64,000 nucleotides of DNA, taken from Trichosphaerium sp. ATCC 40318 (taxonomy: Eukaryota > Protista > Tubulinea). This document shows positions 4,990 to 15,400 of the stretch, one piece after another. Positions within the stretch are counted from its first letter, which is position 1; the number at the start of each line of letters is the position of its first letter. Position numbers and translations under genes: made by a program. The notes under the pieces were generated by a model that saw only the letters and a program-made list of their open reading frames with translations, did no database searches and was not told the DNA's origin. The stretch spans positions 496,001 to 560,000 of the forward strand of contig JALMLS010000062.1 in assembly GCA_038496445.1 (NCBI GenBank). Direction: 5' to 3'.

Positions 4990-6583
4990 AAGAATATTGT
5001 AGGTGGTTTATTGATCCAAAGTAATAGCTGTGCTAAGAACCTCTGTTTTTGAGGTAGCCAAAGAAGCTGTAAAGTTTCCATAGCCATGTACACTGTCATA
5101 GCCTGAGCTGTAATTGACTGACGTTTGTACTGTATGATCAGGGAAATTGTACTTAACAGAATAAGGAACGAGAAAGAGTGCTTTAGAGATTTCTTTTGGG
5201 AAATGTAGATAGGTCTCACAGCTTTTGTCGTCAACATTTTCACAATAAAAGGTCCTAAGAGAGTTAATCATCACCTATGAAAAGATGACAAACCAGAGTA
5301 AGCCTCCACCATAGTGTATTGTGCGTGTAACTTGCTTTGCATGTTGAAAAGCAACAACATCAGTTTTACCTTTTGGACTCTTTACAGTGCAAGGAAGCTC
5401 GGATGAGCTACACACTTAACAAACTGTACTGTACTTAAAATGTAAACCGAGCGCTGCTAGCTTTGGCTCAGAGACCTCGTAGTTGACAATATCACCCCAC
5501 ATAGATGTCCACCAATACGAATTCGCAGCAGACATCTTCCACAGATATCCTGCAAACGCACAAGGAAGCGATCCTTCAATATCAGAAGCCAACTCATAGC
5601 GTGATCCCATACCTGAGGATAGGGTTCATGAGAAAATCCACAGCTAATGTAACGCACAAGCAAGAATCCACAAGTCAGCCGAAGAGCTGATGTACTTTCC
5701 ACGTGAACTTCCAGACTTGTAGTCTTCCCACATCAGAGTAACGATGTTCAAAGGAAGGATTGCAGATGTTTTAGAATCTACAAGATGCTTGATGAGAATA
5801 GAAGTGTCATTCTTGTAAACAAATGTTAGTCGATCCAGTGCAGCAGCAGTTTCAACACAATCAGAACCATTCAACACACGCTCAAATGTGCGAATGTCAG
5901 TAGCGTTTTCTATGACCTTGATAGCCAACTGCTTTTCGAGGAGATGTTCTGATAGCTAGGAAAGAGTTATATTTATTAATAACATTGCAACCAAACGCAC
6001 ATTTTGTAGTTTCTTCAAAACAGCCATTACAACATCAATACTTTGTTCCACACATCTATCTAAACAGCTCATATCTGAAGTCTCACTTGACAAGATATTG
6101 AGACATTCAATTGCCGACTCTACAGTTTCGCCTTTCATGAGGTGATAGCAGACAACATTGTCAGCGTCATTCCCAGTAGTGCGTGTTAAAGTTTCTTTGA
6201 AAACGCTAAATAAACAATATTAGTATTTGACTTATGAAACTAGTAAATAGTACCTGGACTTTACAGCAAGCCGTACTTTAGATGATGAACGTACTTTAGA
6301 GGCTGGTTTCGTAGCACCGATTTTGAAAATGTAGACGAGAAGATCGCAATACTCGTTACATCTTTCAGACAAGGTATTATTCTTTCTGGAGTGTCAAATG
6401 AGGCCAGAGTCCTACGGTTTAACTCACGAACCTCTAGGTTGTAATTGCCTTTCTACATACAATAGCGGGAGTTGCACAGTTCTAACAACTTTGTTGTCGT
6501 TTTCTGTAGGAATGTCGGTTGATCTCTGAGAGACATTATTACTCAAAACGTTAGACTTGTTTTCTTGTTGATATTTCTGTCAT
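4990..6583 (-). pseudogene. Fragmented gene of unknown function
   Basis: Several protein-like minus-strand ORFs (5008-5274, 5416-5610, 5644-5928, 5956-6138) are broken by stops and frameshifts that I could not reconcile by splicing. No family recognised. Confidence 0.3.
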
Positions 6584-12434: not shown

Positions 12435-15400
12435 TTAAACTATGTCTTTACGTTGTTTTGGGCTCAAGTAATCAGTAAGAGTTGAACGTGATGATGAATT
12501 ACAGAATGCGTTTAGCTTTGTTTTTTGATATGTTGTCAAGTTCTTGATATTTTTAAAATTGCTGTGTTTCAATTGATACTTTTGATCCTTTGATGGTGCA
12601 CTAACTGCCATGCTGTTTATAGAAGATACTACTTTTTTACCTTGTGCAGACTTTTTTGCTTCCTTCTCTTGTGATTTTTTATGGATGTAAATGATATCAC
12701 CATTTTGGTTTTTTATAGCATGTTTAATAAGTTTACCGATTGGTAGAATTGTCGGGTTAAAAGTGACTTCGACAACCTACTCAGTTTATAAATAACAAAT
12801 GATTGATAAAAAGAAAACAAACTTGTTGTCAAATTTTTGGCAATTGCACGTGATACTCTTTGAGTGATCAGAATAGTATATTCTTGGTCAATGGCGAAAA
12901 AAAAGTCATTCTACTCAAATTTTCATGGTCGTGAATTCGCAAGGAACTTGTTCCTTGCGCATGACACGCATGAAAATGAGTAGAATGACTTTTTTTTAAT
13001 GACCAAGACAGTGGTTTCTATGCACTTTCCTTTTTGAAACAACGCGGGTTTTTTATAAAATTTATGAGCGGTTAGTAAACCGTCATAAACCGCCGTAACC
13101 CGTCGAAAACCGTCAGAATATTCACAATAAACATGGCTAGCAACTCTTCCCGTGTGTTGACATTCATTAACTCGTTTAAATACAACAAAGATGCTGGTGC
13201 GACACAACCACCTCCAGCAGCACAAGAAACTGTTGTTGACAACAGCCAAACAACGGAAGACCCTTTCTCGTTGATAAAACTTCCTATTTACAATGTCGTT
13301 CCAGAGAAGAGCAAGAAAAGATACTTGAGAGAGTGGCAGAAGTATCAAATTTGGGTATGCCGTTTGACTATTTTTCTGGGTAATTTTTTTAACCTCTATT
13401 TTCAGGCATCAAAAACCAACAATTTCCTTACCAATTTGGAGAAAGAGAGGTTCTTGGATCAGCCCGAGGCATTTGAGGCGTATTTTGCCCACATTACTCA
13501 ACAATATGCTCCGTCAACTATGTGGACCATCTACAGTTGTTTACAGACCATGCGTGTTCAAATCTACGGCCGTAACTTTGACGATGTACCACGCATCAGA
13601 AAATTCCTCAAAAAGCGCAGCAAGAACCACAAGAAGAAAAAGGTACACCTTGCGCACAGTAACTTCGTTTCTAACTCCTTACAGGCTCCAAATTTCACTT
13701 TGTCTCAAATGAGAACCTTTGCGCTTAACGCACCTACTACCCTTGAAGATAACTTCCTTCAACAGAAGGTAGTGCTGTTTTTGGGTTTGTATGGGGCCTG
13801 TCGTGCAGACGATATGCATAACTTGTGCTGGGAGCACGTGCAGCTGTACCAAGATCCGACAAACACACACATCACGGTACAATTTTTTTTTTTTGCTTAT
13901 TCTAAATGCGTGTAGGTTGTTGTTCCTCCAGGAAAGAACAGCAAACAACGTAGCTTCACCATACCAAAACAAAACCATCCTATGTCTCCTTTTCAAACGC
14001 TATTAAAGTACGCATCTTACTTTAGTGTTGACGCAAGGCACCCAACAACAAAATTTCTTCGTTGTTTTAAAAATGGAAAACCGATTAAACGCGCTCTGTC
14101 AAAAAGAACAATTGCTGCAGTTGTTCCGAAAATAGCAGCTTTTCTAGGGCTTGAAAACCCTTCTTCCTACACTGGGCATAGCCTCAGACACACTGCAACC
14201 ACTTTTGCAGCAGATGCTGGTGTTTCTGAAATGAATCTTCTCGATTTTGGTACGTTTTAAAGGTTTTTTTTTTTTTTGTTTTGTAAAACTCACTTTTGTA
14301 CAGGTGGTTGGACGAGCACAGCATCCATGCAAGGATACATTCACTCCAACGCATCAGTAAAAAACAGTAATGCTGCTGTTATTACTAAGGCACTAGCAAT
14401 TGAGGAAGAATCACCAATTCCAATGGCGGTGGAGGAGAAGGAACCCCAAATTTTGAAGTCACGCAAAAGAAAAGCTCCGCCAGCTGTAGAAAAATTACGC
14501 AAACACTTGAAGCTTACTGTAAATGAGGCTGTTGAAAACAAGGAAAACGTAAATGACGAAAACGTGAAAAAAGTCTGTGTAAACCATGATGGCAAAAATA
14601 TCACGATAAACCTCTCCTTCAACTTTTAAATGTTCACAAATAAAACACACCTTGGTATTCAATTCTTTGTTGTTCGTGCATGCTCACTTTGTTTTTCTAC
14701 GCCAAAAAGTCATTCTATTTGTTGTTTCCGTGAAATTAGAATGAAAAAAGTGACTTTAGAATGAGAAAAGGGTTGGAATCGTACAATAAGTCATTCTAGA
14801 ATGTTGTCCTAATTTGCTCACTTTATATCACGAACTTAGAGGGAAAAAGGACCAATCAGATGGGAGAAAAGTCGAATAAATTTTATAAAACCCGCGTCAA
14901 AAAGGAAAGTGCATAGAAAAAAAGTTTGTTTCGAAACTTGTAGAAAACTCCGTTTTGTGACAATTCTTACCTCGTGAAAGTGGTGAAATCCAGCTCTAGT
15001 TGCAACTACACCATCTAGGGATCCAAGATTACGTTCACCGCTCCAAAAACAGTACTACAAAGAAGCGATTAGTCAAAGAATAAAAAAAAGTTTTTCTTTC
15101 TCAAAAAACGTACCATTGCGAATGTTATTTGTTCTAATTCAGGCTCTGTAGACTTTTTGATATCGGATAGATACTTTGGAACTGTTCTCTTGCATTTTTC
15201 AAGAGACTCTATGAGCATCAAGACGAAATTACGCGATTTGATTTCCTTCGTTTTTGTTTTTTCTACAATTGTTGCTCCAGATGCGTCATGGATACTGAAC
15301 GTTCTGTGGCTTTTACGAACTAAACGGTATGATCAGATTTAACGTTCTTGCGTATTTTTTGACTTAAAAGAGTACGTACCACTCTCTGCAGTATGTACTA

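Follow-up and report, generated by a model that had tools for sequence, protein, structure and literature searches.

Cryptons are, to our knowledge, the least understood class of eukaryotic DNA transposons, and we know of no test of their mechanism. They have been described as having no terminal inverted repeats (TIRs) and no long direct repeats but only direct repeats of 4-6 bp (PMC3212892), and a 2026 paper on CryptonA elements again reports the lack of TIRs, with some families given no repeat description at all (PMC13465315); published accounts present Cryptons without conserved structural features (PMC3212892, PMC13465315, PMC12130899). The retroelement DIRS-1 has an internal complementary region (ICR), which is exactly complementary to the outer ends of both terminal repeats, is essential, and goes together with single-stranded intermediates (PMC7192593). 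In the CTX phage, two inverted Xer sites about 90 nt apart have the same arms and centres of 12 and 7 nt, the plus strand takes the form of a forked hairpin, exchange involves one strand, and after integration an inner site is left whole beside one end (PMC3089051). The attC sites of integrons, which are handled by a tyrosine recombinase as folded single strands, keep their structure but not their sequence; extrahelical bases on one arm select the strand (PMC2727003), and their recombination product is resolved by replication (PMC3458562). Here we analyzed a 64-kb stretch (64,000 nt, hereafter the window) of contig JALMLS010000062.1 from Trichosphaerium sp. ATCC 40318, in which positions ~12872 to 14919 constitute one Crypton-like tyrosine recombinase (YR) DNA transposon. 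Its left end holds a palindrome, a mirrored spacer and an inverted copy of the right terminus, which in our reading together form a conserved recombination module and not an accident of insertion.

The element is 2.05 kb long and carries one gene (Table 1). An earlier note, made from the letters of the window, had described its repeats as an A...A'B'...gene...B layout and had read the internal A'-spacer-B' segment as a mirror of the junction that would form if the right terminus B were joined to the left terminus A. All of these repeats were recovered in place, comprising a 127-nt palindrome, a 6-bp spacer, and the two copies B' and B; B' is the reverse complement of B, with 44/44 aligned bases identical and two indels (5 and 2 nt). 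Arm A, TCTTGGTCA (12882-12890), pairs with A', TGACCAAGA (13000-13008), to close the imperfect palindrome, while its central arms (12897-12917 and 12977-12997) are complementary at 21 of 21 positions. The palindrome has three one-sided bulges (GGCG, AA and GT), all of them on the 5' arm. The mirrored core, CAGTGG, is shorter than the terminal core and has no complementarity to it, and B' holds a TATA-like TTTTATAAAA that lies 68-82 nt upstream of the recombinase ATG. An 11-mer, AAGTCATTCTA, occurs four times in the window, where 0.03 occurrences are expected, and every one of them is within the element: two copies are inverted in the palindrome and two lie in the right subterminal region (14707-14717 and 14788-14798), which also has incomplete inverted copies around 14737-14765.

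Since the element is single-copy in its own genome and offers no genomic copies to align, we used its relatives for comparison. An exhaustive protein search returned 2396 of them at E <= 0.001, none of which exceeds 37% identity; a word-based protein search returned almost none, and a scan of metagenome contigs contributed 69 further loci (the gut-metagenome contigs L064-L070 entered this bulk scan only and carry no conclusions). At least 13 elements, whose recombinases are 25-37% identical (~30%), share the order seen in the window: the 11-nt core AATAGTATATT or a variant differing by 1-2 bases, a palindrome of 105-150 nt, a shorter mirrored core, B', the gene, and B with its A-run. The exact core was found 10 times in 8 loci, against 0.54 occurrences expected from composition, and always at the left-end position; nine elements have it without any change. 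The mirrored core of the relatives is consistently shorter than, and different from, the terminal core, and B' pairs with B at 24/24 positions in L055, 21/21 in L021 and 21/23 in L017 E1. Natural junctions of the predicted kind are also present: in L017, a 64-kb ENA contig with two different family members in tandem (E1 and E2), and between L044 E1 and an adjoining mini element, B directly abuts the next core, in agreement with the reading of the internal segment as a mirror of the B|A junction. In L021, L063 and L079 the gene has the opposite orientation with respect to the ends, indicating that the module goes with the ends of the element and not with the promoter.

The comparison also fixed the left boundary. 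The remark of the earlier note that the left end resembles a YR core site, TGATCAGAA-TAGTATA-TTCTTGGTCA, was borne out: this end does have a conserved core-like site, the core AATAGTATATT common to the relatives, which in the window sits within a near-palindrome, TGATCAGAATA-GTA-TATTCTTGGTCA. Because the order in the relatives starts with this core, we place the left terminus at ~12872, so that the conserved boundary lies ~10 nt to the left of A and not at A itself (12882) as first supposed. At the other end, ~150 nt of right-end sequence are repeated on contig C99 of the same assembly and, more diverged, on contig C103. Both similarities stop at the final AGAAAA, the end of B, which supports B as the right terminus. 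The crossover is most likely at the boundary between the A-run and TAGTATATT.

The palindromes of the relatives have almost no sequence in common, yet they fold with z = -7 to -16 against shuffled sequences. As single-stranded DNA, the window's palindrome has a predicted energy of -46 kcal/mol compared to -12.7 +/- 2.7 for dinucleotide shuffles (z = -12.2), and none of the shuffles was as good (0/200). Covariation in A/A', which the earlier note had named as a check, is evident in the relatives: in a 13-element alignment, 16/17 pairs of the basal stem show compensatory double changes. When a strand carrying B followed by the core was assembled in silico, a single hairpin was predicted in the window and in six relatives, with B paired to B' and A to A' and with an asymmetric internal loop exactly at the core (10 nt opposite 6 nt in the window).

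These predicted structures are also strand-specific. In 14 palindromes, including that of the window, 30/30 one-sided bulges fall on the core-proximal arm and 0 on the opposite arm (p = 2e-9). A true palindrome would give equal counts of CGAG and CTCG; on the core-sense strand of 13 relatives we counted 46 and 1, respectively (p = 7e-13). In the folds, CGAG is predicted to form C[GA]G/C[GA]G loops with tandem G.A mismatches just below the apex and again lower down. The asymmetry tracks the core and not the gene, as seen in the three elements in which the gene is inverted.

Table 1. Features of the element in the window and loci that share its layout
Feature	Coordinates	Strand	Basis or remarks
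Left flank	12851..12871	+	taken as host intron DNA; unique in genome
Conserved terminal core AATAGTATATT	12872..12882	+	probable left terminus and strand-exchange region
Imperfect palindrome A...A', 127 nt	12882..13008	+	repeat search, fold prediction
Internal spacer CAGTGG, 6 bp (mirrored core)	13009..13014	+	
B', internal inverted copy of right terminus	13015..13065	+	
Tyrosine-recombinase gene	13133..14629	+	five exons, transcript, catalytic residues
Exons	13133-13354 (predicted only), 13406-13642, 13685-13876, 13916-14249, 14304-14629	+	
Introns	13355-13405 (51 nt), 13643-13684 (42), 13877-13915 (39), 14250-14303 (54)	+	
Right subterminal non-coding region	14663..14875	+	
B, right terminus, ends in A-run	14876..14919	+	inverted copy of B'
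Right flank AAAAGTTTGTT	14920..14930	+	loosely core-like (8/11), taken as target DNA
Elements sharing the layout			L017 E1, L017 E2, L021, L028, L036, L039, L044 E1, L044 mini, L055, L060, L063, L078, L079
Loci with the exact core AATAGTATATT			L017 (twice), L021, L036, L044, L055, L060, L063, L079; same position

Because the conserved mismatches, the bulges confined to one arm and the mirror's lack of complementarity to the core are readily understood only in folded DNA, we favor a site that is read by its structure, with the YR acting on a folded strand or a cruciform, and give this a probability of about one half. Once the ends have been joined, whether as a circle or as a tandem copy, the order would be B, the core, the A-arm, the loop, the A'-arm, the shorter mirrored core, B' and the gene. 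The strand with AATAGTATATT would then fold, or be extruded as a cruciform, into one long hairpin in which B is paired with B' and A with A', and the core would face the shorter, non-complementary mirror in an asymmetric bubble. The recombinase would recognize this folded structure, cleave between the A-run and TAGTATATT, and exchange strands with an A-rich target loosely resembling the B end plus the core; opening the joined form once at the core and inserting it into the target would give the integrated order. Candidate sources of the single strand are replication and the extrusion of a cruciform driven by supercoiling. Folding in vivo, the position of cleavage, the exchange of one strand or of two, and the origin of the substrate strand are all matters that we infer here.

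In the predicted structures the element has the anatomy of a folded-strand site, with a palindrome conserved in structure, an unpaired centre and extrahelical bases on one side, and this places it close to two bacterial systems. It resembles the CTX attP(+) site in having inverted sites ~90-130 nt apart with shared arms and with centres that are unlike in sequence and in length, a single-strand hairpin of ~150-240 nt with an unpaired centre, a complete inner site by one end, and tandem arrays. CTX, however, is a filamentous phage of bacteria; its genome is single-stranded and it relies on the XerCD recombinase of its host, whereas the present element is eukaryotic, encodes its own recombinase and has no known single-stranded stage. 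With attC it shares structure-conserved imperfect palindromes, extrahelical bases on one arm and a YR, although attC sites are ~60-140 nt long, bacterial, and flank promoterless cassettes. A search of the literature revealed no eukaryotic counterpart of attC. The earlier note had listed the fold-back of single-stranded DNA as one option among several, and this option gains support from the conserved, strand-specific mismatches and the one-sided bulges.

Several points weigh against a folded site. The integrated order does not discriminate between the models, since a classical double-stranded circle predicts it equally well. The termini rest on the relatives and on two solo right ends, as the element is single-copy here, and it encodes neither a Rep protein nor a reverse transcriptase (RT) that could supply a single strand. 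The bulge calls and the other features of the folds are those of predicted minimum-energy structures. Finally, the window's palindrome has no copies of CGAG, unlike those of the relatives. The window's element nonetheless belongs to a divergent branch of the same design, since the one-sided bulges, the core, the mirror and the B'/B pair are all present.

The alternative that survives best, although we consider it rather unlikely, is the classical Crypton cycle, in which an excised double-stranded circle recombines with the target at its B|core|A junction, and the palindrome, the mirror and B' serve only as accessory sites for protein binding or architecture, like the arm sites of lambda attP, without ever folding. 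Published Crypton models assume double-stranded circles (PMC3212892), the integrated order fits such a circle as well as it fits a fold, and the reuse of AAGTCATTCTA in the right subterminal region of the window is what arm-type sites would show. However, that reuse is significant only in the window. The arm sequences differ completely among the relatives while their pairing is kept, and CGAG facing CGAG on the same strand, together with strictly one-sided bulges, has no obvious meaning in a duplex.

We regard as improbable a DIRS-like repair of the ends, in which the internal mirror would be a template that anneals both ends to rebuild the junction or eroded termini. The parallel with the DIRS ICR that had been proposed holds formally, since A'-spacer-B' (13000-13065), apart from its centre, is complementary to a junction of B with A. 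As in DIRS-1 (PMC7192593, PMC3266345), an internal stretch complements a junction of the right and left ends and a YR is encoded; in addition, the DIRS-1 ICR is essential and its intermediates are single-stranded (PMC7192593), and one structural neighbor of the recombinase in the ESM Atlas includes YR retrotransposon proteins. Nevertheless, DIRS elements are retrotransposons with an RT/RNase H, long inverted terminal repeats and an ICR near the right end, whereas here there is no RT and the mirror adjoins the left end across the palindrome. The mRNA ends at 14662, before B, and the centre of the mirror is systematically unlike the terminal core, which it therefore could not template. The principle that the junction pairs with an internal mirror is all the same an attractive link between Cryptons and DIRS elements.

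The two remaining alternatives are far weaker. The FRT repeats of the yeast 2-micron plasmid are identical and are separated by unique segments, so that recombination inverts them. The earlier note had suggested a comparable inversion or amplification of copy number between two inverted sites, and the circular form of the element would indeed hold two inverted copies resembling a recombinase site, like the inverted YR sites of that small circular plasmid. We consider such an inversion or amplification most unlikely: in every element examined the two sites have centres of different sequence and length (10 and 6 nt in the window), and nothing but the palindrome separates them, so that an inversion would be without effect. 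Least probable of all is an unrelated foldback, miniature inverted-repeat transposable element or target hairpin lying beside a TIR-bounded element (13015-14919) that holds the recombinase gene: B' and B do frame the gene as clean inverted repeats, but positions 13015 and 14919 show no target-site duplication, the palindrome occurs nowhere else in the genome, it shares AAGTCATTCTA with the right end of the element, and the order of core, palindrome and B' recurs in at least 13 relatives, with the palindrome at the same place.

The flanks were considered separately. The earlier note had suggested that imperfect direct repeats on either side, AATAGTATATT and AAAAGTTTGTT, could mark the crossover, but their match of 8/11, taken alone, is not significant. 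Among different elements, the right flanks have in common only the A-run and a loose, AT-rich likeness to the core, and we thus treat a flanking direct repeat as unproven and a duplication as undemonstrated. Comparison of the outer flanks with each other and with the interior of the element revealed no significant direct or inverted similarity; the only repeat common to both boundaries is a short A-run, and both flanks are unique in the genome. The 21 nt to the left of the core (12851-12871) match the left flank of L044, an element from a soil metagenome (L044 101-121), at 17/21 positions, including an identical GTGATCAG, although the two elements are otherwise dissimilar in sequence. The same segment of the window also resembles the element's own B end (AGTG.AT.AGAA), and the shared flank may be a preferred target half-site resembling the B end or an extra terminal segment.

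The right end has a further feature in the form of a CCAAT-containing block, GACCAATCAG (14850-14870), followed ~25 nt later by the TATA-like TTTTATAAAA (window 14850-14891). The arrangement is kept in all three right-end copies (the window, L003 ~1500-1545 and L012, minus strand, ~1521-1480), where it points outward across B. In a circle or a tandem copy the block would be directed into the palindrome and the gene of the recombinase, and it is thus a possible junction promoter.

We next turn to the recombinase gene, which is intact, expressed, spliced and polyadenylated. A transcript contig of 1100 nt (L013) is 100% identical to the window, has introns 2-4 spliced at exactly the predicted junctions, and ends in poly(A) added after 14662, 33 nt beyond the stop codon; intron 1 is predicted only, since this transcript begins inside exon 2. 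The word-based protein search identified a database transcript product of the gene, P0001 (JGI, 352 residues), which matches the Pfam family PF00589 Phage_integrase with E = 1.5e-11, while no match to DUF3504 was found at E <= 1. When the exons were scanned individually against Pfam, the sole match was Phage_integrase in exon 4, and neither an open reading frame nor a Pfam match for an RT or RNase H was found within the element. In an alignment of 20 members (P0001 and 19 relatives), residues R109, K140, H221, R224, W247 and Y256 are invariant or nearly so. The nearest clusters in the ESM Atlas are eukaryotic (including arthropod) Phage_integrase proteins and Crypton-derived proteins of the DUF3504/QRICH1 type, and YR retrotransposon proteins are among the structural neighbors; the nearest solved structures are those of the Cre and Xer recombinases, and a weak match of the family profile to the solved structure of IntI4 was obtained (E = 5e-4). 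All four introns are multiples of three in length, and introns 1 and 2 are free of in-frame stops, which leaves an unspliced frame of 260 residues at 13133-13915.

A search of the 70-Mb assembly at the DNA level revealed no second full copy of the element. The genome thus holds one full copy, the two solo right ends on C99 and C103, and one further YR-like gene, on contig C39. For the right end on C99, no inverted partner was found within 4.5 kb, and a B-like repeat upstream of it is borderline only (E = 0.11). The gene on C39 (L009 7289-8362; ~194289-195362 on C39) is 40% identical over exon 4 and carries Arg where H-x-x-R has its His, and its locus was found to contain no core, palindrome or B pair; this gene may be decayed or domesticated. 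In the window, the element is flanked by two exons on the minus strand (14971-15051 and 12642-12776), to which it lies antisense; these exons can be read through as one frame and are weakly similar to methionine sulfoxide reductase A (PMSR, E = 0.017). The junction of these host exons reads ...CFWSGERNLGSLDGVVATRAGFHHFHE followed by VVEVTFNP..., with ~16 residues of the usual PMSR domain apparently missing, and the host intron would, even without the element, be ~155 nt long, compared to 39-54 nt for the introns of the element.

Some observations on the relatives are recorded here in their own right. In L044, the mini element noted above (1838-2313) is a 476-bp gene-less unit with a core, palindrome, B' and B that directly follows a full element, so that non-autonomous derivatives exist in this family. 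In L017, a 542-bp insertion (5313-5854) flanked by the 5-bp repeat CCATT distinguishes this contig from an almost identical assembly (L019, ~5311); it lies 13 nt past the right end of E2 and is probably an unrelated polymorphism of a small transposon. Locus L018 (1-4341, Logan SRR19201369) consists of five tandem recombinase-like domain units of ~1 kb in two or three long open reading frames, and its best named relative is a 693-residue beetle protein that likewise matches in three segments; domesticated arrays of several domains are a possible reading. As a tandem array of recombinase domains L018 is uninformative on termini, and it was discarded as evidence on this point.

The element is Crypton-like in its single, intron-bearing YR gene, its lack of an RT or DDE transposase, its small size, and the lack of a classical target-site duplication. 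It differs from Cryptons as described in its 11-nt core, ~120-nt palindrome, mirrored site and B'/B inverted repeats of 20-50 nt, and it does not conform to the description of Cryptons as being free of TIRs, given a B'/B pair of 44-51 nt in the window, with B' in a subterminal position. The earlier note had raised the concern that the layout might already be known as Crypton subterminal repeats. This was not borne out in the papers searched: searches on Cryptons and palindromes, and on eukaryotic transposons and folded single-stranded sites, revealed no description of the layout (subscription-only papers and Repbase notes lay outside the scope of the search). Within this literature the architecture is undescribed.

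Cryptons are hard to annotate because their ends are called featureless. The conserved and easily searched ends described here, with the core, the palindrome, the mirrored core and the B'/B pair, offer a signature for annotation as well as defined substrates for biochemistry, and recombination sites that are defined by structure and flexible in sequence are of interest as tools for genome engineering. A broader proposal can be made only tentatively, as we hold it to be somewhat more likely wrong than right: a widespread group of Crypton-like elements in eukaryotes would recombine via a folded strand or cruciform, as the first eukaryotic counterpart of attC and of CTX attP, and the DIRS ICR would be the same device, inherited or shared. 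If the folded-strand reading is true, structure-specific tyrosine recombination would extend from bacteria to eukaryotes, and the presence in DIRS retroelements of an internal region complementary to their termini would have a concrete explanation.

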